Assembly: GCF_000143415.4 (NCBI RefSeq)
Contig: NW_003314297.1
Coordinates: 124,001 to 188,000, forward strand
Length of the DNA: 64,000 nt
Source: Selaginella moellendorffii
Taxonomy: Eukaryota > Plantae > Lycopodiophyta
Direction: 5' to 3'
Each line of letters starts with the position of its first letter. Position 1 is the first letter of the stretch. The notes under the pieces are model-generated. The model saw nothing but the letters and a program-made list of their open reading frames with translations, had not been told where the DNA came from and searched no databases. Positions 215 to 24,314 of this stretch are shown piece by piece. A program made the translations under genes and the position numbers.

Positions 215-1261
215 GTGGGAGTACGATTGGGTGGAGCGCCACTTTTGGAGGTGGAGCGATCGCGCGTGGGCGATGTAGTGCCCAACACCAGCGAAATTCT
301 CGCCAGGATTCAAGAGAATATGAGCAGGTTTGTGAATCTTCTCGAGGAGCAGCGGCAATGGGCGGAGGGTGTCTACTCGAATGGGGAAGGATTGGAGCTT
401 TTCCTTTTCCAGGTGAACGCCATCGAAGGCGAGGGGTTTGAGTTGTATAAAGAGACCCAGGAGGCGATTGCCGCAGGCGCGCTGCTGGATGGCTCTCAAG
501 ATATGAGCCAAGAGGCTGAAGCCATGCGTTGCCTCCACAGGGCATTTGCACACCAGCTCCAAGGAAGCAATGCAAACTTGGCACCGAGGTTGAGCGTTTC
601 TGGCATTCTGGATGCGCACAGGTGCCTGATGAGCTCGAGCAAGCCAGGCATCGCCGGGAGGCTGAGGCGCGAGGACGAGGTTGCCTTCACCGTGACGACA
701 CTGAACTTGCCGCATGTTTTCATGTGGCCTTCGGACGTGGAGGGAGCTCTTCACAGGCTCGTGGATGAAACCAATGCGGAGCTCGAGGAGCTCTTCGCGA
801 GAGATTGTCACGACCGGACTGAGAGACTTCTCAAGCTCGGGGCACGGTTCTTCCTCGAGTTTGAGAACATCCATCCTTTCAAGGATGGGAATGGGAGGAT
901 CGGGAGAGTACTGCTTGCAAAGCTATTGGAGTCACTTGCGCCGTTCCCGAATACCTTGTTGGTGGAAAGTATGAAGCAGGACCCTCCGTTTGTGGACGGG
1001 GATGACTACCGAGAATGCTTCGAAAGGGCCCAGGCAGAGCAGGAGTTCGATCGTAGCGAGGAAGGTGGCGCGCTGAGGTTGACGAGAGAGGGCGCAGTGA
1101 GCAAAACTTCTCCTCCAGAGGATCTGGCGGCTTTGGTGGTGGAAGGCTTGTACGTGGGGTGGAAGCGCCTGTTTAAGGCTCTTCATGAAGTGGAAGTTCC
1201 AGTGACAAGGGCATGGAAACCAAAGTGGTGGGAATCACGGCAGTCCCTGGTCCAGGCATGA
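215..1261 (+). CDS. Fic/Fido-domain protein (putative AMPylase, class II with N-terminal inhibitory helix); intronless; true start uncertain (first in-frame ATG at 320)
   Basis: Exact Fic catalytic motif HPFKDGNGRIGR; upstream QVNAIEG resembles the (S/T)xxxE(G/N) inhibitory motif; ILDAHRCLM...AGRLRREDEV pre-catalytic segment. Confidence 0.9.
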   Translation: MGVRLGGAPLLEVERSRVGDVVPNTSEILARIQENMSRFVNLLEEQRQWAEGVYSNGEGLELFLFQVNAIEGEGFELYKETQEAIAAGALLDGSQDMSQEAEAMRCLHRAFAHQLQGSNANLAPRLSVSGILDAHRCLMSSSKPGIAGRLRREDEVAFTVTTLNLPHVFMWPSDVEGALHRLVDETNAELEELFARDCHDRTERLLKLGARFFLEFENIHPFKDGNGRIGRVLLAKLLESLAPFPNTLLVESMKQDPPFVDGDDYRECFERAQAEQEFDRSEEGGALRLTREGAVSKTSPPEDLAALVVEGLYVGWKRLFKALHEVEVPVTRAWKPKWWESRQSLVQA

Positions 1262-2518: not shown

Positions 2519-3326
2519 GTGTTTGATTTCAAATAGTCTAGTACTGCAAGCGCCACCAAGATAAATTTCATTTCCTGCATTTAACTGTTTAAATAGTCTA
2601 GGTTATCGTGTCCTAGACGATCTGTACAATATAAAAATTGATTTTGATAATGAACCTGATTTGGATGTCCCTGATAGCATACTTTCCTCAACACAGCTCT
2701 CCCCATGCTTCTCCTCCCCGAGTTTCAAGCATGCCGTGAGAAGAATGCACTCGTGATGGATCTGAATGTCAAATGAGAGCTCATTTCTTCTCCATTTGCT
2801 ACATTTTCCATCAACCATCTCCAAAACAGATTACCCGGAGTGCTAAACTTTGTTGCTCTGAAGGCCAGACTATCACCTAGATGTTCTAGCACGAAGAATA
2901 AGGTTTCAAACAGCCAGATTTTCATAAACAGGGACAAAAGAAAGACAGACAAAGAAGACAAAGAAAGACAAAGAAAGACAAAGAAGCCGAATTTCGGATC
3001 CTGGAAAGTGATAGCGTGGAACCAGGAGAGTCCGTGCCGAGCGAAAATATTTCTCAGCCGACAGCTTTCTTAGGCCGACATTCTTGACAAGCGCCAATAG
3101 CAAGCGAACTGGAAAGGTAGCCCAGCTTAGATTCTCTTTAAATTTCTGAATTCCTCCAATCACGCAAGCCAAAATTGGTCCGAGTTGACCAGGGAATCTG
3201 AGTCCGCGTCAGAATTCTTGCTGACGAACAAGTCATCAACTTTCATTTATTTTATGTTGAATTGGTATCGACAAGAATAATTGGGCCTACAGTTCGGAAA
3301 ATTGTTTTGGAGCTCTAGAGCCTAAT

Positions 3327-4931
3327 CTAGCACACGCTCACTTGCCTGTAGTGGCTGGGCCTCCCATCCGGATACCTCACAAGCGCCATCTCGAACCCGT
3401 CACGCTTGAGCAGCATCTCATGCTCGAGCTCCTCGCAAGCCAAATCTCCCACACCCGATCCCCATCCCCGGATGACCTTGGAGTGCAGCAGCAAGAACTT
3501 GCCATCGGCCAGCTCCACGACTGTGTTGTGCCACGGCGTCGGTATGTGGAAGTTCCTCTCCTCGGAGGAGCGCTGTGCCGCCACGAGCGAGGAGTGAATG
3601 ACGTTGATGCCGTACTTGGGGCCGCGGTTTGGATGCGGGTGGATGGAGACGCGGAGCTGCAGTGGAAAGAGCCACTCCACCATCGCCGAGTAGGCGCGGT
3701 TCCTCAGGATCATGAGGAAGCCGACTTGGCTGCACAGCTTCTTCTTGGCCGACTTCGATGGGAGACTCTTGCAGCTCTTGTGCTCGTAGAGATCCTCAAG
3801 CATGAACCTGGAGAAGCCGCGGTACAAATTGCGCGTCTCCGGGTCCTCCTTGATGTCCCTGTGCACGGCCGACTCGTCACTTCCAAACAAGCGGATGAGA
3901 GCTCGTCTCGCTGTCTCGGCGTTGGAGGTGAGGTCGGTGGCGACGGGATGCTCCAGCTCGGTGCCGGAAACGAGCTCCTCTATGCTCTCGTCGCTGTGGT
4001 TGTCCAGCAAGAATTCGTCTAGGCGGTAGAAGCTGACCAAGCCCGGATACAAATCGTGCGCCATCTCGCGAAACATCTCTCCGTATGTATCCACGGTAGC
4101 ATCGTCAGATCCAACTGCAAGAACAGAGCTTTAGTCATGAAAAGAGCTTGGATCGATCGTATGATCTTTACCGAGATCAGAGAAGACATGGCCATCCGAG
4201 ACGACGTTGTAGTGCACACCGGGGGCGTACACGGCTTTGATGAGGTCCGCGACAATCTTCATGGAATGAATTGCGAGCTCCTCGGCCTTGTCGGGGTATT
4301 TCCCCAAAGTCTTGTCGGAGTTGCACGACTTCACCGGGAAAGCTGGAAGGATGAACTCGAGAGGAACGTTTCTTGCGACGTGATACCTCACCTTGTCCGC
4401 GAACCTCTGCTTGCCCCCGCTAGTGAACCACTGGTCGTGCCTTGGGAAGTGGATGTAATTTGCCTCGATGATGTCCACCACCTTGGAGGCGATCACGTCC
4501 ACCTCGAGTGGAGTGTGCGATGCGAATGGCTCCAGGAGGCAATCCCTCGTCATGACGCTGTTGTCCAGCAGGAGAGTGGCCAAGTAATCGGTCGCGCTCG
4601 ACTCCAGCGCTGGTTCATCCATGGAGAAAACCACGCCCTCGAATCCATTGCCAATGTATCTCTCGTACACAGTCGCCTCCCAGCTTGATGAGCTCGCGGC
4701 GTCAAGAAAGGATATATTGTACTTATGGATCTCTGGAGTGGTGGAGCGCGTGGCGTTCTTGGCCGCCTCTAATTCCGCGGCCGTGCTCGCAACCATGGAA
4801 GAAAACACGAAACCATCGCCTCCTTGATCGGCAACCGGGACATGCCATGATGCGGATTGGGAGATGAAGCACACCTCGCCCCTCTCCCTGTGGATATACA
4901 TGAACGCGATCTTGTCCTTGGGATAACCCAT
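3327..4931 (-). CDS. Dit1/PvcA-family isocyanide (isonitrile) synthase / dityrosine-precursor synthase, ~515 aa; exons 4931-4172 and 4114-3327
   Basis: Motifs LPAFPVKSCN..K.LG..PDKAEELA, VSDGHVFSDLVG, LYRGFSRFMLEDL, RNRAYS, RVSIHPHPNRGPKYGI, HIPTPWHN; a 57-nt GT..CAG intron (4171-4115) joins the two ORFs in frame; TATA-like TATAAGAA at ~5039-5032 (-). Confidence 0.93.
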
Positions 4932-6211
4932 GATGGAGAGCTGATCAATGCGTGAATTCACACTCTATGAGAATGTAGTTTGATCAAATAAGGGATTGCT
5001 AGAAATGCGTTGAGGCGGTTCTTGGGTTTCTTTCTTATAGGTGGCCAAGCCGTCCAACTCTGACGAAAATAGTTGTCCGTGGTTGGACTGTTCTCTCTGA
5101 ATAATATTGTATTATACGTTGATGGGTACGTGTGGGTACTAGAGACCAGTTCTTGAGCAAGTAGCTTCTCGCTGCTTTCCAGATCCTTTCATGCAAGCTT
5201 TGGGAAGCACATGTCTAAATTGATCAATATTAAAGAATAGAAGGTTCGTGTGTTCAAATAACTCTTAAAACATGTAAACGAGTGGCATACAAAGTTTGAC
5301 CACTCTGTGCTGCAATTGCTCAAATTTGGTTTTGATTTAGGCGGCTAAATCAACCAAACCGACTAACCGAGTAACAGAGTGACCAGGCGAGTAAACATAA
5401 AAGTCCAAAACGAGCAAAGACATTAGACATTCTTTGACCATCCCCGGTTTACGTAACCGTATCTGCCCTACGCAAATTTGCCAGCGTTCCTACGTTGACA
5501 TGAAAGCATGTATGGCGGCAAGGTTCACGACCAAATCCATTCGCAGAAAAAGCACCTTTCATGAAATGTGAACAATCCACACGTCTCAGCTTTTGATTTT
5601 GATTTCCAGCTTTGGACTTTTCCAGTGTAGTTTCTTATATGCTAGTCTCTTCTATGCTGTTTTTTCAGCCCTCTCGTTTGATAATTTACACATGTCCTTT
5701 CAGGGGAAAATGTAGTATTTGACACATAACATTTGCCTGTACACCTTTTGACATAGGAAAAATCTAGGAATCAGCAAGTCGACATGTAGGCCATAGAAAG
5801 TTTTTGTGTCCCTTATCGAGTTTTTCCGAGAACTCTCTGATAAGCTTTGATTTATACAAAATCTAGTTGATTTCAAGGATGCAGGGGGATCCCTCTCAAG
5901 CCCAACGTCATGAAATGGCGCATGAGATCAGCAGGCCTGGTCAAGGACTAGTGAGACTTCGCAACCGTTCTCGGCAACAATGACTTCCAGCTTCTCGCGT
6001 AAGAACAACATGGCGAAAACTTCCAGGATGAGGAATGTGAGTGTCATTCCCGATCCAGTCTTTGAACATCTTGGCTGGATGGAAGTCATGGCTTGGAGCT
6101 TGATCCAGCTGCAAGTGTAAGTGACCAAAATTGACCAGTCAAAGCGACTCCAGTCTAGGAATAGGTTTGATTGTTTTCGAATTCTTTGGCGGGAGACTCT
6201 AGGTAAGAGCT

Positions 6212-10398: not shown

Positions 10399-13300
10399 AT
10401 GGCGTCTCCGTCGTCTTCTCTGTCGATCACAGGTGGAAAATCCTTCCGGAAGCTCATCAGCCCGAAATCCTTCAAGACGGCGACGACTCCTTCTCCCAAC
10501 AGCAGCGGCACAAGGCGCACATCCAGCGGCCGCTACATGACGCTGTCCAAGGACGATCAAGATCTTGGAGGAGAGGTGAGCTCCGAGTTTAATCCCAGCT
10601 ATCATGTCCACATTCCTCCAACGCCGGACAATCAGCCAATGTCCTCCACACCCGCCGACCAGATCCTGGCCGCCAAGGTGGAGCAGCAGTTTGTTTCCAA
10701 CACGATCTTCAGCGGTGGATTCAACAGCGTGACGAGGGGCCATGTCTTGGAGAGGATGGTCGAGGCCGACGCATCCCATCCCCAAATGGCGTGCGCTAGG
10801 AGCGGGGTGTGCTCGGTGGAAGGCTGCGATGGGAAGTCCATGAGGGACGAGAGGGGCGAGGACATCACCCCTTGCGAATGCGCGTATAGGATCTGTCGGG
10901 AGTGCTATGTGGATGCGCTGGAGAGCACAGGGAAGTGTCCCGGATGCAAGGAGGCGTATAAGGTGATCGATCCAGACGGGGAGGTCTTGCCACTGCCGCC
11001 ACCCCCAGGGAGAGTTGACAGGAGGCTCTCGCTGCTCAGGTCCAGCAAGCCATCGCTGCTGATGAGAACACAGACGTCCGACTTCGATCACGCTCGATGG
11101 TTGTATGAGACCAAAGGGACTTACGGGTATGGGAACGCTCTCTGGCCCAAGGACGAGGCTTACATGGAGAGTGGAGATGATGGAGCTCCTCCGAAATTCA
11201 ACGAGAAGGCGAGGAAGCCGATGTCTAGGAAGACAGGGGTGTCTGCTGCGATTCTTAGTCCATACAGGTACGCACCACTGTTGCTTTTTGGTTTTTTATG
11301 TCCTGGTTCTTTACAGACTTCTCGTGATAGTCCGGTTGGCAGTGCTGGGACTTTTCTTGGAATGGCGGGTTCGACATCCCAACAGAGATGCGATGTGGCT
11401 GTGGGGAATATCGGTGGTCTGTGAGATCTGGTTCGCCTTCTCTTGGGTTTTGGACCAGCTGCCCAAGCTCTGTCCCGTCAACCGTGCCACCGACTTGAAC
11501 GCGCTCAAGGACAGGTTTGAAACGCCGAGTCCCGAAAATCCCAGGGGCAGATCGGACCTTCCAGGCATCGATGTGTTCGTGTCTACTGCTGATCCTGACA
11601 AGGAGCCAACTCTGGTGACGGCCAACACCATCTTGTCGATTCTAGCTGCCGAGTATCCGGTGGAGAAACTTTGCTGCTATCTTTCCGACGACGGTGGTGC
11701 ATTAATCTCTTTCGAAGGTCTGGCCGAAGCAGCTAGTTTTGCCAGGTTCTGGGTTCCTTTCTGCCGGAAACACGATATCGAGCCTAGGAATCCAGAGACT
11801 TACTTTCTTCTGAAGGGTGACCCGACGAAGAACAAACTGAGGTCGGATTTTGTGAAGGACAGGAGAAGAGTCAAGCGAGAATACGACGAGTTCAAGGTCC
11901 GCATCAATGGACTACCTGATGCAATCCGAAGAAGATCCGACGCCTACAATGCTCACGAGGAGATACGAGCCAAACGTTACCAGATAGAAAGTGGTGGTGA
12001 TCCAAGTGAGCCGCTCAATGTTCCGAAAGCTACTTGGATGGCTGATGGCACCCACTGGCCGGGAACTTGGACGTCTTCGAACAAGGACCACAGCCGAGGA
12101 GATCATGCTGGGATCATTCAGGTACGCAATGTTTTCTATTACATTGTCTCTTTCTTACAACTTTCCTTTTTCTCGTTGCAGGTTATGCTCGCTCCACCAA
12201 GTAGCGAGCCTCTCATGGGAAGCTCTGACGAAGACAACCTCATTGACACGTCTGAGCTTGACATCCGGCTTCCGATGCTTGTTTATGTTTCAAGGGAGAA
12301 GAGGCCGGGATACGACCACAACAAGAAGGCAGGCGCCATGAACGCGCTTGTGCGAACGAGTGCTATCATGTCCAACGGTGCCTTCATCCTGAACCTTGAC
12401 TGCGACCACTACATTTTCAACTCTCTTGCGCTGAGGGAAGCAATGTGCTTTATGATGGACCGAGGAGGCGACAGGCTTTGCTACGTCCAGTTCCCGCAGC
12501 GTTTTGAAGGCATCGATCCAAACGATCGCTACGCCAACCACAACACCGTGTTCTTCGACGTCAACATGCGGGCACTGGATGGTGTACAGGGACCAGTTTA
12601 CGTGGGGACTGGCTGTGTTTTCAGAAGGATAGCGCTGTACGCGTTCGATCCTCCACGACACAAGAGTCGTGGTTGCTGCGGTGATAGAGACAGCAAGAAG
12701 AAGTCGGCCAAGTCGGATATCGAGATAGCATCTTTGAACGGTGGAGACGACGAAGATGCGGAAGCTCAGCTGGTTCCAAAACGGTTTGGAAATTCTATCA
12801 GCTTTCTGGAGTCGATACCCGTGGCGGAATTTCAAGGCAGGCCACTGGACGCACAAGGTGTGAAGTATGGAAGACCTCCCGGAGCTTTGACAGAGCCTCG
12901 TGAACCACTGGATGCTGCAACCGTGGCTGAAGCTATCAATGCCATCTCTTGCTGGTACGAGGATAAAACAGAGTGGGGACACAGAGTAGGATGGATTTAC
13001 GGCTCGGTCACAGAAGACGTGGTAACTGGCTTCCGAATGCATGACAGAGGCTGGAGATCGGTCTACTGCGTGACCAAACGAGACGCCTTCAGGGGAAGTG
13101 CTCCTATAAACTTGACGGACAGGCTGCACCAAGTCTTGCGATGGGCTACCGGGTCAGTGGAGATTTTCTTCTCACGCAACAACGCTCTGTTTGCAAGCTC
13201 GAGGCTGAAGTTTCTCCAGCGGATAGCCTACTTGAACGTCGGGATTTATCCGTTCACGTCGATCTTCCTTCTGGTCTACTGCTTCCTCCCGGCACTGTCG

Positions 13301-13912
13301 CTCTTCACGGGCCAGTTCATCGTCCAGACGCTCAACGTCACCTTCCTGGTCTACCTCCTGACTATCACGGTGACGCTGTGCCTTTTGGCTGTGCTGGAGA
13401 TCAAGTGGTCGGGCATCACACTGGACGAATGGTGGCGGAACGAACAGTTCTGGGTCATTGGGGGAACCAGTGCGCATCTGGCAGCCGTGCTCCAGGGGCT
13501 ACTCAAAGTCATCGCTGGTGTGGACATATCTTTTACTCTGACGTCCAAAGCAGGTGGAGAAGGCGAAGATGACGCTTACGCCGACCTCTACATCGTCAAG
13601 TGGTCTGCCCTGATGATTCCTCCGATCACCATCATGATGACCAACTTGATAGCGATCGGGGTCGGAGTTTCCAGGACTATTTACAGCGAGATTCCCCAGT
13701 GGAGCAGGCTACTCGGCGGAGTGTTCTTCAGCGCCTGGGTGCTGTTCCACCTCTATCCGTTTGCGAAGGGACTCATGGGGCGACGAGGGAGGACTCCGAC
13801 CATCGTTTTCATCTGGTCGGGACTTCTCGCCATTGTCATCTCACTGCTCTGGGTGTCGATCAGCCCTCCGTCTCAAGCTCAAGGCATTGGTGGTGGCTTC
13901 CAGTTTCCGTGA
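10399..13912 (+). CDS. CSLD: Cellulose synthase-like D protein; introns 11268-11316 and 12122-12181
   Basis: CSLD N-terminus ([29 protein letters not shown], Cys-rich RING-like region), DDG, DCD, TED and QVLRW motifs, C-terminal GGGFQFP. Confidence 0.97.
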
Positions 13913-15479: not shown

Positions 15480-18400
15480 ATGCCGTTTTATGTTTTGGAT
15501 AGTTATAGTGAGCTTTTTACATCTTTTTAACATTAATAATTTTTATATTATATTTAGTATTTGAATCCAATAAAAAAAACTAGGATTTTACTAAAGTTTT
15601 TAGAAGATAAAATAAATAAACTCTTCAAGTTACCTGGAAAAAATTGAATGTTATTGCTAATTAAAATTTCAAAAATATTTTTTGTTACTTATTAAATCAT
15701 TACTTTTTTATTACTAAATTTTGAGAAATGGGAATAAAAAATTAATTAGGTCTAAAAAATTGATATTCAGTTCCAAATAAAAATGCTATAGTGTAATAAT
15801 TAATATGATACTTAGTTAAGATAATAAATGTATACACTAATTAGAGAATTACATCATATTATTTTAATAAATAACATGATTTTTCTATATGGCAAAAAAC
15901 ATTAACAGATAATATAACAATATTTAGAAAGAATAATTACATTTATAGATATAAAAATTAAAGGTTTCTATTTCCAATATCACTTTCTTTTTTTGCACCA
16001 CAATGAAAATTTAATAGCTTAAACAACTTCATAGTAAAATTTGTAAAGTTATCATTTAAATTTATAAATATTATGTGTAAAAGAAAACTTTAAACAACAA
16101 AAGTGTATTATATTTCTTCTAGAAAAAAATTTCATATGAATATCAAATAACAATATTTATTTTAAGTCTTTTTTACCTAAATTTTCAATATAAAATTAAT
16201 CACAATAGCTAAAAAAGTACAATATATTTTATTTAATTACTTCATAGTTAGAATTATTATCATTTGGTATTTTATATGTCAAACTCAAAATAATAGATAT
16301 TAAAAATTTATAATTATTTTAAATATTTATTAAAACTGTATCAAATATTGATATTAATGTGTTTAATATTACTTTTAATAATTTTAATACTTAACTTGAC
16401 TTTTATATCATCAAAGTAAAGTATCATAATCTATACTAAATAATTTATTAGAGTTGTCAGTGAAGAATTATATTAGATTACTTAAATTCTTGTATGACTT
16501 CCATAAAATATCAAAACTTAATTACAAATAAAGAAGATTTAAGAAATATATTGATTATAGAATGTTCAAATATTAAAATCTCATTATCAAATAAAGTATT
16601 ATAAATTTTGAGAAATGAAGTTTTATTTTATTTTAGTATAAAAGTTTTTTATAGTATCTAGGGGTGGGATGTTGCTTGATGAAAAGTATAGCATTAATAA
16701 TGATGACTATAATAAAAAGAAAGAGATTTTTAATAATGTCAGCACTTGACTATGAATGCACTATTGATGAGTTTTAATTATAATTTCATAATGTAGCCTA
16801 ATATTAGATGATTGTTTTTTTAATGAAACTAAAATTTTATTTTTTATGAAAATATTTTACAAATATGAATTAATAATAAATATATTACTATAAATAACTA
16901 TATAATATAGATAATAAGTATATATATTCTAATTAAGAGGATGAATAATTTGCTGGTACCTCCACTAGAAAAGGTAGAAATAAATTATAGTAATAAATGA
17001 TAAATTTGTTGAAAGGTAATATTAGAATCTAATAGTTTTTAGAGAAAAAAAGTAGTATATAACTTAAATATCTTGTTTGTTAAATATCTACAAAATATAT
17101 TTTAAATCTCATTAAATTTGAATGTTTATGGAATGTGCTTCCAAAATAGATTTATCACAGATACAAATAAAAAATTCATAGATGTATTTGCTAACTACCA
17201 GACTCTAACTATCCATGAAGTTCCTAAAGAACCTGGTAAGTTGGTTGAAGCATTTTTATGTCAAACTCATGCATTTTTTTAATGCTAAAGTTATAAATGA
17301 GTAGCAATGAAAGATTTTGGCAAAATATAATAATATCCAATTGTCCAACCTCATCTAGCAAGACCAAGGACTAATTATGAGGATCTCTTACTTTGATTAT
17401 TTTCCACAAATACCAATTCCACTATTTTTTATCTTCAGCCCCAATAAACTAGAGAGCTGTGGCCAGGTGTTTAATCTTGTCTATGCATGAAAGCAATGAT
17501 TGACTTCACTTGGAATAATAAAATCTTAGAACATACCTTACACTTTATGCTTTGATTAGGAAGATTTAAGTAATAAAAAAATAAGGAAATAACCATATGA
17601 CTTGATTTTAGTTAAGTAAGTCCAATAATGTGAAATTGAAACTTTTGGACAAAGTGTGTTACTTAAAAATTATTGAATTCTAACATTTCTCAGTTCCAAG
17701 GGATCTATATAGTGGCAATGGAATGTAATTGTTAAAGATGGGATATGACAAAATATAGGAATATTGTAAACTATTACCAAATAGTGAATTTGAATATAAG
17801 AATTTAATATTAGGCTTCTTGAATGTTTTTAGTTAAAAACTAGATAATGGATTTGGTATTTAAGCAAGAAAGAAAATATAAAAATAATTGTTACTACTCT
17901 TTTGAAATACATATTATTAATAATATCAGAAAGTAATTTCTAATTATTTCATAGTAGGAAATGGTTTTAAAATTTTATTAATTATAAATACAAGATTAAT
18001 CTAAATGAATAATAACCATTAGATGATAGAATATTGAGGTATTTTATAGGTATATCCACTACCATATAGCCAAAAATATCATGTTGAGTAAAAATTAAAC
18101 TAAGATAAACTATAAAGTTGTTGTTATGTAAAATTTTCTTGAAGTATTTTTTTATTTCTGTGGTAAAACTAGAGCTGTGATATTTTACTTATCTTTCCAT
18201 AATTTTTCATTGCACAGTATTATCTCTACATCTGCACAAAAGGCCTTGAAGATTGTTTATTTAATATATAAGAACAAAAACCTCTTAGTACACAAGGAGA
18301 AAGGTAAACAACAAATACCAACTGCTTACTTTAGATTTTTTTTATACATACACAACTAAAGTAAAACTTTTGGCAGAAGTAATAGCCAATAAGGGATAGT

Positions 18401-19120
18401 TTTCTTTCATGTATATAAAATATATGAAAAATCTGGTGGTTTTCACTCACCATGTAACTATAGCTCAAATATTAATTTTAAAGTATTGCATAATAAACTA
18501 ATAAAATAATGTATTTATAAATTATATTTCCTCTTTAACCCATAATAGTAGAGAAATTACCTTATCTTACCATCTCTTGTGTTGCAAGGAACTATTATGC
18601 ATTTCTTAGATTTTATCAATTTATATTTTCTCAATGTGTCTAGAACCATTCTCTATTGCCAACTTTGAGGTTTAATATAAATATGGTAGCAATATGGATA
18701 ACTTATGTATGTTTTTAAATGCAAAATCCAATACATAATAGAAATTTTAGTAAACTATGAATTCAGATAAAACTCATTACACACTTAAAATTATAATGTC
18801 ACCAAACCAGTTAGAAAACCTAGTTTACAATTCTTTGGTTTTGTGAAAACTCAATTGCTTTTAAAGCTTGATGTGTTTAGGGTTGTGTATCTTTTTATGA
18901 AGGCAATTAAAAAAATTCAAATTCAAATTTCATGATGATAAAATAAAATGATTTTATCTTCCCCAATACATACATTATTATCTAATTTCAGTATTGTTCT
19001 TTGGAGATAAATAGTAGCAAATTTAGATATGTATACAATCAAAATTTATACAAATCTAATTAACATATTAATTCTAACTATCAAGAACACCCTAAAACCT
19101 AAACATATATTCTTGTGAGC
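15480..19120. repeat. Very AT-rich, CpG-depleted intergenic block, probably decayed transposon DNA
   Basis: Composition and absence of ORFs; no family assignable by eye. Confidence 0.45.
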
Positions 19121-19414
19121 TAGTATGTACTGTGGTTCATGACTGGCATGTAACGAAGTTTTCTATCGTCTTTTGTAATATGTATGTTTCCTTTCTATCA
19201 ACATAACTATGTGTGCAGAATGAGAGTTTTGCCTATTGCTTCCTGGAGGAATCAATTGATCTGTGATTTTCTTTGCGATCATCATCATGCACTACTTTGA
19301 TAACCATGAGGATCCTCCACTCAGTCAAGTTCCAGATTGTCCAACCAGAACAAATAACTTGATCAATGTATGATGTATAGAGATGAGATCCTCCAGAATA
19401 TCATAACAGTTAAA

Positions 19415-22400
19415 TCTATACATATAAGTGATAGTGGGGAGGCCTGCTGGCTGTTGGATCCCAGGCCTGCTGGCCATTGGATCCCAGGCCCGGGCTAGGG
19501 TCAGTAGCCATGGTTGTGTGAGAATTTTTTCTGATGTTTGCACTGGCCAGTGGGAGACCACTACAGCTCTGGTGCTCATTGGCTCCGAGCGAGGCAAGAC
19601 AGGCATCTAACATGTGCCACCAGTGGTGTCCTATCCCCGTGCCTGTTCTTTTTAGCTCACCCTAGATGCCTTGCCACAATTGAGCTAATGCTTGCTTGCC
19701 GGATCCAGCGGCAGAGTTGGAGCCAGAGCCAGCCTTCACAGCCAAAACCATCAAAGAGTTTGCAGTTTGCAGGTAGCAGCGTCGCATGTTCCCGAAAAAT
19801 CAGCCAAGAAGTCCGGAGAGCCACGGATGGACAACCACGTTTAATCATTGGTGGCTTTAAACCACCCATATTCAGGAGGGTCTTGTCCTTCTATGAGAGA
19901 GAACAAGCCCAAGGTGAGTTCTCAACTCCACCCACCTCTCACGGCTCAAACGTCATTGTATTCTAAAAAGCATAGGAGGCTTTTTGAATGCTCACTACGC
20001 CCTGGAAAATGTGTGCCAGTCCTGTGTCTAGGTTTTATTGGTTGTTAGATTAGTCTCTTTTGTTTATAGCTTCAGGCGTGTACAGATTGTGCTCTCACTA
20101 TATAGTCTTCGATTTTTTTTTTTTTTAATTTTTTCTGGCTTTTACTTAAAACCTCTGAAAATTTTAAGATAAGTTCTTTGATTTTCTTTGATGCATCACT
20201 TGCATCTATTTCTTGCCTTAAGTTTAAATTTGCACTAGATAGGTTATTTCATTTTATTTATCAAATAAAATTTCCTCCCTAGCAAATATGCCTCAGCTTC
20301 GTGAAGTATTAAGAGGCATATGTCACCACTTGCCTCCAACTATTGACATTAGCACATATATTCATACTCACAACAACCTTGCATATGCTAATGAAGAAAC
20401 TAATTTAGACTTTGAACATGCTAATACAAAAATTACTTCAGATCTTGACAATGCTAAACATAGCACATGCTGATGAAGGTCACACAAATATAAACCTTGA
20501 AAATGCTAATGAAACTAATACAAATGCATGCAATCATCATAGTTATACTGTCTATAAGTTAGCACATCAAAAGAATTATAATAACCATACAACACATATA
20601 TTTAATATTGGAAATATGTCATTTATATGTGTTTTTTGTAATGCATTACATTTTGAAAATGAGTCAAAATCAATGTGTTGCCAGAATGGAAAGGTTTTCC
20701 TTCCCCAACTTTCATCTTTACCTACTATATTACGTATGCTTTTTAATGAAAATAAAAACTCTAACTTCAAAATTAACATAAGAAATTTCAATAGTGCTTT
20801 AGCTTTTCATCAATGGGTGCTAATGTTAATAATTTAAGTGGTAAAGGCCCATATTGCTTTAGAATACATGGTCAAATTTATCATAATATTGCTTCAACGT
20901 ATCCTGCTGCTAACATGCTACCATCATGTTTGACACATATGAGGCTACAAATATTAGAAAGCAAAACCCATTCAACACAAATTGTGATTTTAATTTATTA
21001 TTACAATTAGATCACTTGTTAAAAATAATAAACCCATATGCACAAGCTTTTCAAATGATGTATGATTTTAAATCACAAGAACAATGTTACTCAATTTGCA
21101 ATGGAATTCCAAAACATAGTGTTTACATGATTGTTAAAAGTGAAGGTACTAATCTACATTGTTATAACTTGCCACAGACTAATGATATTGCTATTGTTTT
21201 TGCTATCGATAAGGATGAGCCATTTTTTGATAGAGAAATATACATACATCTATATAACTCACAGCCAGAAAACATTTCTATTCTTAATGAAATTTGTGAT
21301 CTTATGATTTATCTTTTACTTTTGCCATTTGGTGATAAAGGTTAGCATGAAAAATTTTACCACAATGAGTCATATGTAACACTACTCTAGTACTATACAT
21401 ATCAATTATCTCAATGGGATAGCATTGACAACTCTTTCCTTTATGATCAGGTGCTACATGTTGGGAAACTCACTTAACAATTTATGGTTGATGCTTATAT
21501 AAATGTTACCTTAATTTCTTTTGCACTCATTAAAAACACTTAAAAGTGGATACTACATAGATTTTATGGACTATGTTAACAACAAAGCTACTATTAATAA
21601 TGCTGAACTTGGAAGAGTTATAATTTTGCCTTTTACATTTCCTAGTAGCCTATGAGCAATGCAACAACATCATCAAGATGCTATTATTATTGTTACACAT
21701 TTTGAAAAACCTAACTTATATATTACATTTACATGTAACCCAAAATGGCCTGAAATTATGCAGAACTTACAGCCAAATGAATCACCTGAGGATCAACTTA
21801 ATCTTATTTCAAGAGTTTTCAACTTGAAACTTAAAAAATTCCTACATGACATAAGTATCAAAGAAATTTTTAGGAAGTGCATGGCATATATTTATGTTAT
21901 TAAATTCCAGAAAATAGATTTGTCTCATTGTCATTTTTTAGCAATGTTATTAAGTGAAGACAAGATAAAAAACCATGACTCAATTGATGAATTTGTCACT
22001 ACACAGTTACCACATCCATTGCTAAAACCAGAATTGCATAACATAATTATAAATTATATAATACATGGTTCATGTGGTTATCTGAATCCTAGAAACCCTT
22101 GCATGGAAAATAACAAATGCTTTAAGAATTATCCAAAATAATTTAATATTGAGACCATTTATTGATTATCCTGATAACTATTGACCAAATAACAGATGCA
22201 CTTTCATAAAAAATGGTTGTACTATTGATAATAAATGGGTTGTTCCTTATAATAAATACATTTGTAAGAAATATAAAGCACACATCAATGTATATTAAAT
22301 ATTTATTTCAATATGTATACAAAGGTTATAATTGTGCAACATTAAAATTCCTAACCACATCTTAAGAATGAAGGACTTTAAATTGGGATGAAATCTCAAT

Positions 22401-24314
22401 CTTTGTCGATGTTCGATATATTTCTACTCCCAAAGCCATGTGGTGTATATTTAAGTTTCATATGCATAATAAATCACTAACTATTATATAGTCTATTTCA
22501 TACTAGGTCATGAATAAGAAGCACTAGAAAGAGCCACTCAAAATGAATAATGCTTACACAATAGTTCAATTTAAATATGCAAAATATTAATGTAAGGCAA
22601 TACATATATGCTTAAATTATGTTGCACTACACATATAAAAAATCTTCTCATAAATGACAATTACGCTAACAAAAAGCTAAAATCATATTAAGAATGTATT
22701 TCATATCTCCTTGTACCACTTGTGGCTTATATTACTCTATAAAAATGGTGTATTATTGAAAATTCCTCTTTTAAACAAATAGCTATGACAATGGGGCTTT
22801 TAGCAGATGATTCAAAATGGTAATATTGCATACAACTTTTAAAATGACATCCCAATTAAAATAGTTATTTGTTTTTATTTTTTTTATATTATTCATTAAA
22901 AGATCCAAATCTATTATGGGATGAATTTAAAATTGATATATCTAAGGATTACGCTAGAAATAATATAAACTATTTTGATATTGCTTTACTCAATATTAAC
23001 TCAAAATTCCAACTACACAATAAATTTAATTGTGATTTTGGTTTACCACTCCCAACTCTTACTCCCATTATTAAACATATGCTTAATACACAGATCCTTG
23101 ATCCATCACAAAACCAAATCAATGCAAACATAAATTAATTCAATCATGAACAATGTTATATTTTTTACCTCATTATGAATGTCATTGACACAAACCAACA
23201 TCAATGTTTCTTTATTGATGAACTTAGTGGTGCTAGGACAACTTTTCTACTTAATACCATCATTACAGCATTATAATTAGAAAAAATAAAAGTAATCAGT
23301 ATGGCATAGACTAGGATTGCAAACATTTGCTAAAATATGGTTAAACAGCACATACAACTTTTAAACTTTTTATTTCTTTAAATGAAACTTCTATCTCTGC
23401 TTTAATAATTAATAGTGTTGCTAGAAAAACCATTAAACAAGCAAATATTGTCATATGGGATGAAATTAGTACAGTCCACACATATACTTTCTCTACAGTT
23501 AATAAATGTTAAAGCATTTCCAATGTAATTTTAAATCATTTGGAGGTGTTATAGTGATTATAAATGGTGACTTTTGTTAAACCCTTTCTATTGTTCCCCA
23601 TGGCCATAAAACTTCTATTATTTCAAGCTTAGTTAAAATGAATAAACTATAGTCACTCTTTACAACACTAACACTAATAAAGAACATGAGTTCAAGCAAT
23701 TTTTGTTTTTTTGAATGGCTTATCAAACTTGGCAATGGTGATAATAGTTTGCAATTGCTATATCTCCCACAAGATATTATCCAAATACCACATGCACTAT
23801 CTATCTTTACACTTGTTGTAAATTTTGCTTTTCCAAATACCAATAACATTATAAAGACTTACATAGCTGCATCAAAAGTTATTCTCACCCCATTCAATGA
23901 CAACACATTTAGAATAAAAAATGACTTGGTTGGAAGACTACCAGGTGATCCATATATTTACTTGAGCATTGACATAGTTGACTCAAATCACCTTGAAGAG
24001 TTCTTAATTGAATTCTTAAATTCAATCGCCCCATCAAGACTACTACCACACAAATTAATTCTAAAACAAAATATTATTTTGATTCTTCTTAAGAATATAT
24101 CTCCACAAATTGGTTTATGCAATGGCACTCACCTCATTCTCAAGCAAGCATCCCAAAATGTTTTAGATTGTGAAATTATCATGGGACAATTCAAGGGATT
24201 GTGAGTTTTTATTCCACATATTACCCTTACACCTTCAAATGTTGAAATCGCTTTCAAAATGTCCCAAAGACAATTCCTAATTCATCTGGGTTATTACTTA
24301 ACTATTTCTAAAAC
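19415..24314 (+). mobile_element. Helitron (degenerate Rep/PIF1 helicase), 5' and central part
   Basis: Candidate 5' end A|TCTATACATATAAG at 19415; fragments CVFCNALHF..MCCQNGKV, GPYCFRIHGQIYH, PNLYITFTCNPKWPEI, KFQKIDLSHCH (HUH), IHGSCG..NP..PCM, EFLNS..P....PHKL.LK, GLCNGT, RQF.I.L.Y.LTISK; many stops and frameshifts. Confidence 0.9.

Follow-up and report, generated by a model that had tools for sequence, protein, structure and literature searches.

The window, a stretch of 64,000 nucleotides of Selaginella moellendorffii DNA, carries on its minus strand, at 4931..3327, a gene that is read from the sequence in two exons and encodes a protein of 515 amino acids. Exon 1 (4172..4931, minus strand), which opens with the ATG at 4931-4929 and is covered by RNA reads and transcript contigs, encodes residues 1-253 and one base of codon 254; it contains a Dit1-type N-terminal extension and the beginning of the isocyanide synthase (ICS) core, and its last residues are ...SDGHVFSDL. 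It is followed by a phase-1 GT-AG intron of 57 nt (4115..4171, minus strand), which contains an in-frame stop, and by exon 2 (3327..4114, minus strand), which encodes residues 254-515, comprising the remaining ICS core and a C-terminal tail with the final residues ...YPDGRPSHYRQVSVC, and closes with the stop TAG at 3329-3327. An earlier sequence-only reading of this DNA had claimed a complete frame of 515 amino acids with one 57-nt GT-AG intron, and this was borne out, as the spliced product is identical to the database protein SELMODRAFT_417826 of S. moellendorffii (here P0154), from scaffold GL377601.1. The transcribed region extends into a 5' UTR (4932..4989, minus strand), delimited by the ends of the X2 contig at 4984 and the X3 contig at 4989, which are contig ends and not mapped transcription starts, and into a 3' UTR (3280..3326, minus strand), the reach of the X2 transcript contig. 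The TATA-like box noted earlier is present as the putative hexamer TATAAG (5034..5039, minus strand), which was read from the sequence and lies upstream of the RNA 5' ends, with 5039-5034 placed ~45-55 nt from the furthest contig ends (4984/4989).

RNA from three studies covers the gene with the predicted splice. The intron at 4115-4171 is skipped exactly by one raw stranded RNA-seq read and by two independent transcript contigs, the joint 4114>4172 being confirmed in X29, X2 and X3, and no unspliced contig was seen among the transcript contigs. The 38 stranded RNA-seq reads are restricted to 3201-5000 and their orientation fits minus-strand RNA; one spliced contig extends over 1648 nt, and the spliced contigs of a second study agree with it. 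Expression is low, and of two runs from a single study one has no reads.

As had been claimed, the gene encodes an intact Dit1-type protein of the DIT1_PvcA / isocyanide synthase family, and this is supported by the Pfam match, the frame, the invariant residues and the modelled fold. Against Pfam PF05141 (DIT1_PvcA), for which the cut-off is 26.4 bits, the whole protein scores 273 bits (E 3.6e-81) across profile positions 1-264/273, and both exons match this profile separately (4.7e-27 for exon 1 and 3.9e-46 for exon 2). P0154 retains every one of the 53 columns that are invariant in an alignment of 49 family sequences, and the motifs HDQW..GG, LYRGFSRFMLEDL, SIHPHPNRGPKYGI and HIPTPWHN, which had been recognised from the sequence alone, were all found, in invariant family columns. 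Solved isonitrile synthases were matched by sequence at 3e-29 and 1.3e-25, and a Foldseek search with the AF2 model (pLDDT 86, pTM 0.88) matched PIsnA with L-Tyr or product bound (9DH4, 9DHM) and PvcA (3E59), with E-values of 7.6e-22 to 6.7e-20 and target TM-scores of 0.83-0.87.

The surroundings of the gene are those of a plant chromosome. A CSLD-type cellulose synthase gene with a RING domain is present at 10399-13912, 5.5 kb from the Dit1-type gene, other plant genes on the contig are ENT, IQ and Metallophos, and the scaffold, 1.75 Mb in size, has plant genes on both sides of the gene, all of which upholds the claimed residence among plant genes in a plant nuclear genome. The gene had been presented as a lone one; it is instead one of at least six diverged intact family copies, which are present on six scaffolds and are accompanied by fragments and mis-modelled copies (P0003, P0008, P0002, P0087, P0156 and P0159). 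The paralogs are surrounded by PPR, kinase and other plant genes and are 72-80% identical to each other, compared with a global identity to fungal proteins that does not exceed about 41%. The GC3 of the family is 0.67-0.78 (0.77 in the window copy), against 0.53-0.71 in neighbouring host ORFs. A broken half-copy, 42 kb away, shares the 3' flank of the gene through local duplication.

These features bear on whether the gene could derive from contaminating fungal DNA or from a chimeric assembly join, a reading to which the otherwise fungal or bacterial distribution of the family and a GC3 of 0.77, somewhat above that of neighbouring host ORFs, lend some colour. Such an origin is extremely improbable, however, for a gene flanked by plant genes on a 1.75-Mb scaffold, with paralogs among plant genes on other scaffolds that are far closer to each other than to any fungus, and with a 3' flank that local duplication has carried to the half-copy. 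It is also at odds with the spliced transcripts from three studies and with the 2024 DNA runs, which contain the stretch plus its flanks.

The gene is expressed, spliced and under purifying selection. Pairwise dN/dS among six paralogs is 0.14-0.20, and comparison of the window copy with each paralog gives 0.14-0.19, with dS of ~0.9-1.1; the dN/dS near 1 that the sequence-only reading had associated with neutral evolution was not seen. The low read depth, the lack of reads in one run of the same study and the presence of fragments and mis-modelled copies in the family could point to a decaying relic, still transcribed and no longer useful. This is very unlikely, since the frame is intact, every invariant family residue is kept, splicing is correct and dN/dS remains at 0.14-0.19 against every paralog at dS of ~0.9-1.0.

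A protein search returned 440 matches among 1.84 billion representatives. Among the matches listed, every named match above 50% identity belongs to S. moellendorffii and chytrids come next, and neither the 150 representatives listed nor the best 120 of 300 homologues include another named plant, an absence that rests on protein databases from which other lycophyte genomes or transcriptomes are possibly missing. Chytrid proteins show 36-41% global identity over the full length, including the N-terminal extension; they cover 98-99% of the paralog P0001, the query of this search, and their alignment with P0154 begins at the first residues. Bacterial proteins show 28-35% identity, limited to residues ~180-465. 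The proposed closer relationship to fungal Dit1 than to bacterial PvcA is therefore sustained, the chytrids matching in full length and the bacteria in the core.

The tree splits fungi and Selaginella from bacteria with support of 100/100 and recovers the Selaginella sequences as monophyletic (100/100), with Selaginella and chytrids grouped at 81/93, which is moderate support. An AU test did not reject fungal monophyly excluding Selaginella (delta lnL 2.05, p=0.343), and proof of nesting within fungi was not achieved by this means. The phylogeny suggested by the sequence-only reading thus confirms the separation from bacteria and does not prove a position inside fungi, and the fungus-to-plant transfer claimed there stands as the best reading of the combined evidence, which the tree alone does not prove.

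The same AU result (p=0.343) is compatible with vertical inheritance, in which an ancient eukaryotic Dit1 gene, together with its intron, would have persisted in fungi and in the lineage of Selaginella and disappeared from other plants. A phase-1 intron old enough to be common to chytrids and Pezizomycotina agrees with this history, as do the sporadic ICS proteins of oomycetes and an amoebozoan (Lim et al. 2018, PMC5974471). It would, however, need many independent losses across green plants, and it sits poorly with the restriction of named matches above 50% identity to S. moellendorffii, with no other plant named among the matches listed, and with identities that peak in chytrids (36-41%, full length) rather than being equidistant from all fungi; vertical inheritance is accordingly unlikely. 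Acquisition from a fungus accounts for these observations with good probability: the nuclear Dit1-type gene of S. moellendorffii probably stems from one acquisition of fungal genomic DNA that was later multiplied, and its product would perform Dit1/PvcA-like chemistry. The gene was most likely taken up as genomic DNA, and the transfer would have run from a fungus, possibly a chytrid-like one, to the plant.

The intron provides a second line of evidence on this history. An intron at the same codon and in the same phase (phase 1) as in P0154 is present in the paralog P0155 and in the Dit1-type genes of Powellomyces, Phlyctochytrium, Blyttiomyces and Colletotrichum, and in the chytrid genes, as in P0154, it follows SDGHVFSDL. 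This identity of codon and phase between the plant gene and fungal Dit1 genes is new here. The three chytrid genes mapped carry four or seven introns, and the plant copies one or none. Within Selaginella, the intron-bearing copies (the window copy and P0155) branch first in the tree, and the four copies without an intron group as a clade with support of 100/96. Gain of the intron in the plant, which the four intronless paralogs could suggest, is ruled out by P0155, the three chytrids and Colletotrichum; as the codon and phase are those of the chytrid and Colletotrichum genes, the intron was inherited and not gained in the plant, and it is not the mark of domestication for which it had been taken. 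Because both Pezizomycotina and chytrids have it, the common intron indicates eukaryotic ancestry and no particular donor.

The proposed course of events would begin with one acquisition of fungal genomic DNA, for which chytrid-like sequences are nearest. The acquired gene would then have multiplied in the plant, giving rise to at least six diverged intact lineages, among which the window copy and P0155 would retain one ancestral fungal intron, removed by the plant spliceosome, and the derived clade of four copies would have lost it.

Substrate, product and physiological role in the plant can be suggested by analogy. As in yeast Dit1, PvcA and PIsnA, the substrate would be an aromatic amino acid, most likely L-tyrosine, whose alpha-amino group would be converted to a formamide or isonitrile with a sugar-phosphate as carbon donor. 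The published product of yeast Dit1 is formyl-tyrosine, and PvcA cannot take the place of Dit1: yeast dit1 is not rescued by the bacterial enzyme (PMC7345447), so that in the Dit1 clade the reaction may go no further than the formamide. The plant protein probably acts in the cytosol, as it carries no additional targeting peptide.

By tblastx, the window and 10 kb beyond yielded no P450 or TauD/PvcB-like sequence, the P450 query being the one that adjoins Colletotrichum Dit1, which agrees with the earlier statement that the window contains no Dit2-like P450 or PvcB-like oxygenase, and no P450 is annotated beside any paralog. For the chytrid Dtr1-like MFS exporter, a search with the MFS part of the chytrid protein P0009, which was word-seeded and could miss distant kin, gave 177 relatives at E<=1e-10, and the 120 of these that were listed include no Selaginella protein. 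Co-transfer of partner genes was therefore rejected, with no Selaginella protein among the Dtr1-like MFS relatives listed and no P450 or PvcB-like sequence found near the gene.

Other genes in the neighbourhood are potential partners of plant origin. Downstream of the gene, past the left edge of the window, there are two 2OG-FeII_Oxy genes at distances of 3.7 and 8.2 kb, and a third accompanies the broken half-copy, 0.7 kb from it. The three are 97-98% identical in DNA and thus form a very recent array, and set against the ICS dS of ~0.9 this identity indicates that the linkage between ICS and oxygenase genes is neither old nor conserved. At none of the other paralog loci is there a counterpart to the upstream neighbour seen at the window copy, and the BAHD transferases that occur close to P0001 and to P0155 share only 25-34% identity. 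A conserved gene cluster around the paralogs is ruled out by the unmatched upstream neighbour, the divergent BAHD genes and the recent 2OG array, which together argue that no old linkage exists.

The position of these oxygenases, together with a modelled core that matches PIsnA with isonitrile product bound, could indicate a plant isonitrile pathway, in which the ICS gene works with adjacent plant-type 2OG-Fe(II) oxygenases as a host-recruited counterpart of PvcB/IsnB. This is rather unlikely given the recent origin of the array relative to the ICS copies, the lack of a 2OG oxygenase neighbour at the other paralogs, the assignment of the oxygenases to PF03171 and not to the TauD type of known ICS clusters, and the published formyl-tyrosine product of the Dit1 clade, for whose enzyme PvcA is no substitute (PMC7345447). 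A wider formulation may be offered tentatively, as a possibility with the odds against it: Selaginella could have a formamide/isonitrile amino-acid pathway, of a sort that the literature searched does not describe from land plants, that combines the multiplied fungal Dit1 enzyme with tailoring enzymes of the plant itself, such as the neighbouring 2OG oxygenases, and yields either a metabolite for metal binding or defence or a formyl-tyrosine/dityrosine-like constituent of spore walls.

The presence of the family had not gone unrecorded. RefSeq names its proteins 'spore wall maturation protein DIT1', and ICS proteins from 'one species of moss', taken here to be S. moellendorffii, and from 'plants' are given as outliers by Lim et al. 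2018 (PMC5974471), so that the novelty implied by the sequence-only reading was overstated. The literature searched yielded no paper that connects Selaginella with isocyanide synthases or with dityrosine. If the enzymes are active, a vascular plant would possess tyrosine formamide/isonitrile chemistry that is described only from microbes in that literature. On the transfer reading, the family would also be a clean example of the passage of genomic DNA from one eukaryote to another, into a plant, with a history that is traceable because a donor intron was kept, which host splicing removes and which a derived clade has since lost. The family is of limited practical value, as the genes are already annotated and their presence was mentioned in passing in 2018, and the remaining question is biochemical, not genomic.

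Among known systems, bacterial PvcA and PIsnA work with TauD-type oxygenases. The structures of PvcA (3E59) and PIsnA (9DH4, 9DHM) have the same fold as the plant model (Foldseek TM 0.83-0.87) and have the motifs PAFPxKSxN, SDGHVFxD, LYRxxxRF, RxSIHP and TPWH in common with the plant protein, but they are only ~24-25% identical to it in the Foldseek alignment and lack the N-terminal extension of ~170 residues. Saccharomyces Dit1, of the DIT1/DIT2 dityrosine pathway, belongs to the same Pfam family and has the N-terminal extension and ICS core of the plant protein, with ~34% identity in alignment and all core motifs in common. The yeast protein is reported to be cytosolic (PMC7345447), and the plant protein carries no additional targeting peptide. 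Co-localisation of Dit1 with Dit2, a P450, forms the core of the dit gene cluster (PMC10153163), whereas neither an adjacent Dit2 P450 nor a Dtr1 exporter was found in the plant in the sets searched; the plant differs further from Saccharomyces in having many paralogs and an intron in the gene, and the Ascomycota Dit1 clade stands apart in the tree from the group of Selaginella and chytrids. The nearest relatives are the Dit1-like genes of Powellomyces, Geranomyces, Phlyctochytrium, Blyttiomyces, Cladochytrium, Zopfochytrium and Irineochytrium, whose proteins align collinearly with the plant protein, beginning at the first residues and reaching the C-terminal ...DGRPSHY motif; several of the chytrid proteins are predicted to be fused to a Dtr1-like MFS exporter or are encoded beside an OPT transporter, neither of which was seen in the plant. 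As an event, the proposed acquisition is of the same kind as the fungus-to-plant transfers into early land plants described by Richards et al. 2009, for which a review (PMC12448838) lists three lycophyte cases, in that a fungal gene became fixed in a non-seed plant; in Selaginella, the ancestral intron of the donor would have been kept and the gene has expanded into a family.

The isocyanide synthase (ICS) gene occupies 4931..3327 on the minus strand, where an ATG at 4931 opens exon 1 (4931-4172), followed by a 57-nt GT..AG intron containing an in-frame stop (4171-4115) and by exon 2 (4114 to the TAG stop at 3329-3327). The spliced product is 515 aa long and agrees at every residue with the database protein P0154 (SELMODRAFT_417826) of Selaginella moellendorffii, encoded on the 1.75-Mb scaffold GL377601.1 (GCA_000143415.2), of which ~124,001-188,000 is the window. 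This confirms the observation made in the sequence-only reading, which had described a complete 515-aa frame with one 57-nt GT-AG intron. Exon 1 and exon 2 match the Pfam family DIT1_PvcA (PF05141) separately (4.7e-27 and 3.9e-46), and for the whole protein the score is 273 bits, where the cut-off is 26.4. The GC3 of this copy is 0.77, within the family range of 0.67-0.78; adjacent host ORFs have 0.53-0.71. The plant genes said to share the contig are present, including a CSLD-type cellulose synthase with a RING domain (10399-13912) and ENT, IQ and Metallophos genes, and the proposed host-like size of the intron also holds, since the annotated CSLD gene uses 3514 nt for 1134 residues, leaving ~109 nt for introns of the same short class. 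A long AT-rich stretch (16001-24000, GC 0.22-0.35) lies between gene-rich segments of GC ~0.5.

The gene is expressed and spliced. In raw stranded RNA-seq (run X29), 38 reads fall on the gene, all within 3201-5000 and all oriented as for minus-strand RNA, one of them spanning the joint 4114>4172. A second study (X2) contains a 1648-nt contig running from 4984 to 3280 that omits exactly 4115-4171, and a third, under a different organism code (X3), contains contigs with the same joint and zero mismatches, so the splice predicted from the sequence alone is found in RNA; no unspliced contigs of the gene were seen among the RNA contigs. At equal sampling depth, a second run of the X29 study (X30) gave 0 reads on the gene, whereas X29 gave 38, indicating low expression that is probably condition- or tissue-specific. 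A few RNA-seq reads of opposite orientation (plus-strand RNA) lie at 2801-3100, just past the 3' end of the transcript, an interval to which no gene is assigned. DNA runs from 2024 contain the ICS stretch together with its flanks.

An exhaustive HMMER search with exon 2 against 1.84 billion representatives returned only 440 proteins at E<=0.001. All matches above 50% identity to exon 2 were from S. moellendorffii, followed by the chytrids Blyttiomyces, Cladochytrium, Phlyctochytrium and Irineochytrium (42-50% identity over exon 2); in the full-length search, Zopfochytrium, Powellomyces and Geranomyces came next, then Ascomycota including Saccharomyces Dit1. The chytrid proteins are collinear with P0154 all the way between the initial residues (M-x-YPKD..F.Y) and the C-terminal DGRPSHY motif, so the plant protein has the fungal N-terminal extension without an added targeting peptide. 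The bacterial homologues, confirmed at 153 loci among 185,579 species genomes, have 28-35% identity and align only over residues ~180-465. A maximum-likelihood tree (57 rows, 484 columns, LG+C20+F+G4) separates bacteria from fungi and Selaginella at 100/100, unites the six intact plant proteins in one clade (100/100) that groups with chytrids (81/93), and gives Ascomycota Dit1 a clade of its own (100/100). The closer affinity to fungal Dit1 than to bacterial PvcA, first proposed from motifs, was recovered. The best tree in which all fungal sequences are monophyletic without Selaginella is nevertheless not rejected by the AU test (delta lnL 2.05, p=0.343), so the protein tree alone supports a family that is eukaryotic, fungal-type and closest to chytrids, but not its strict nesting within fungi.

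The main addition to the earlier account is the position of the intron, which lies after ...SDGHVFSDL and splits the following codon behind its first base. An intron of 55 nt interrupts the paralog P0155 at this codon in the same phase, and P0001, P0151, P0152 and P0153 are intronless. When annotated fungal proteins were mapped back onto their own genes, a phase-1 GT-AG intron was found at exactly this codon in Powellomyces hirtus, Phlyctochytrium, Blyttiomyces helicus and the ascomycete Colletotrichum truncatum, with junctions CTC A|gt..ag|TT GGC in fungi versus CTC G|gt..ag|TT GGA in Selaginella. The site falls within a motif that ranks among the family's most conserved, and none of the sequences carries additional residues at this point. 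The intron had by implication been taken as a sign of domestication in the plant, a reading that its presence in chytrids and C. truncatum contradicts. The shared intron also rules out bacteria as the source, as well as transfer by cDNA alone. Among the plant copies in the tree, the two that have the intron diverge first and the four that lack it are monophyletic (100/96). The simplest history suggested by these sequences would involve the entry of intron-containing genomic DNA from a eukaryote, the loss of the remaining chytrid-type introns (two of the mapped chytrid genes have four), the retention of one ancestral intron now removed by plant splicing, and a single loss of that intron in the ancestor of the intronless clade. 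As the intron also occurs in Pezizomycotina, it does not by itself single out chytrids as donor, and very old vertical descent is likewise compatible with it.

The family search, seeded with the paralog P0001, identified six intact S. moellendorffii proteins (P0001, P0151, P0152, P0153, P0154 and P0155; 72-80% identity to the window protein) and several fragments or mis-modelled copies (P0002, P0003, P0008, P0087, P0156 and P0159). The intact copies are spread over six scaffolds, surrounded by plant genes that include PPR and kinase genes. Two identical copies of P0151 lie 14 kb from each other (L003 and L004, GL377593.1), P0153 and a second DIT1_PvcA gene model, 550 aa long, are arranged head to head (L088 7324-9143), and the broken half-copy P0003, 42 kb from the window gene, has a 3' flank in common with it. 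Pairwise Nei-Gojobori dN/dS is 0.14-0.20 among the six intact copies, and the window copy differs from the others by a dS of 0.9-1.0, values indicating old duplications and purifying selection on the copies.

Three lycophyte cases of fungus-to-plant gene transfer were reportedly described by Richards et al. in 2009. Full-text literature searches returned no paper tying Selaginella to isocyanide synthase or dityrosine, and the Selaginella Dit1 case is absent from a 2025 review of plant horizontal gene transfer. Five of the six intact proteins are named 'spore wall maturation protein DIT1' in RefSeq, where P0154 is a hypothetical protein, and UniRef annotates the Selaginella proteins as pyoverdine/dityrosine biosynthesis protein. 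Passages of Lim et al. 2018 (PMC5974471) mention ICS proteins 'in one species of moss' and an 'outlier representation in ... plants', without further study; we take this moss, whose species those passages do not name, to be S. moellendorffii. The central claim of the sequence-only reading holds: the plant harbours and uses an intact Dit1 gene of fungal type. Its view of the intron and its estimate of novelty require correction.

From an alignment of 49 sequences, AlphaFold2 gave a model (mean pLDDT 86, pTM 0.88) with a core matched by Foldseek to PIsnA with L-tyrosine (9DH4), PIsnA with isonitrile product (9DHM) and PvcA (3E59), at E ~1e-21 and target TM-scores of 0.83-0.87; sequence matches to the same isonitrile synthase structures are 3e-29 and 1.3e-25. 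The window protein keeps 53/53 invariant columns of the family alignment (49 sequences). Residues 1-110 (4931-4602, minus strand), the Dit1-specific N-terminal extension, are modelled as an alpha/beta domain that Foldseek matches weakly to PAS domains (E 0.01-0.03, ~105-120 aligned columns), a lead rather than a finding.

P0154 would be a cytosolic enzyme of the Dit1 clade; by homology its substrate would be an aromatic amino acid, most likely L-tyrosine, whose alpha-amino group it would modify. Passages of PMC7949033 describe PvcA- and IsnA-type enzymes as forming an isonitrile whose new carbon comes from ribulose-5-phosphate. The product of yeast Dit1, for which PvcA is no substitute, is most likely N-formyl-tyrosine (PMC7345447), and in yeast Dit2 couples the Dit1 product, yielding the bisformyl-dityrosine that goes into the spore wall (PMC10153163). 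The plant enzyme may well make an aromatic amino acid formamide or isonitrile, the formamide being somewhat likelier than the free isonitrile because of the Dit1 affinity. Family expansion under purifying selection and patchy expression offer a weak argument that specialised metabolism fits better than a single structural role.

The absence of a Dit2-like P450 and a PvcB-like oxygenase noted earlier was upheld by tblastx of the window and 10 kb beyond: neither the P450 adjoining Colletotrichum Dit1 nor the downstream neighbours of two bacterial pvcA homologues had a match there. Two plant-type 2OG-Fe(II) oxygenase genes lie just past the left edge of the window, 3.7 and 8.2 kb downstream of the ICS gene, and a third adjoins P0003 (L001 15331-16510, L001 19821-20999 and L086 7637-9317, stretches of GL377601.1 left of the window). 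Their mutual DNA identity of 97-98% makes them far younger than the ICS duplications and marks them as a very recent array. BAHD transferase genes near two other ICS paralogs share only 25-34% identity, and the upstream neighbour of the window gene has no counterpart at the other paralog loci; no old, conserved cluster is seen around the paralogs. A host oxygenase could hypothetically have been recruited as ICS partner. An intact ORF of 348 codons (215-1261, plus strand), which has a Fic domain (Pfam 3.8e-14; canonical motif HPFKDGNGRIGR) and lies 2 kb past the 3' end of the ICS gene, is uncalled in the GenBank annotation of the scaffold and has eukaryotic Fido proteins as its nearest Atlas clusters.

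Among chytrid relatives, the Cladochytrium (P0005) and Irineochytrium (P0007) proteins are predicted fusions of Dit1 with an MFS, Dtr1-like exporter, as is P0009, an ENA protein that groups with them. The best 120 of 177 relatives of this MFS part include none from Selaginella. At the Powellomyces and Phlyctochytrium loci (L089 4617-7468 and L090 1691-4518), an OPT transporter gene is either the immediate neighbour of the Dit1-like gene or two genes away.
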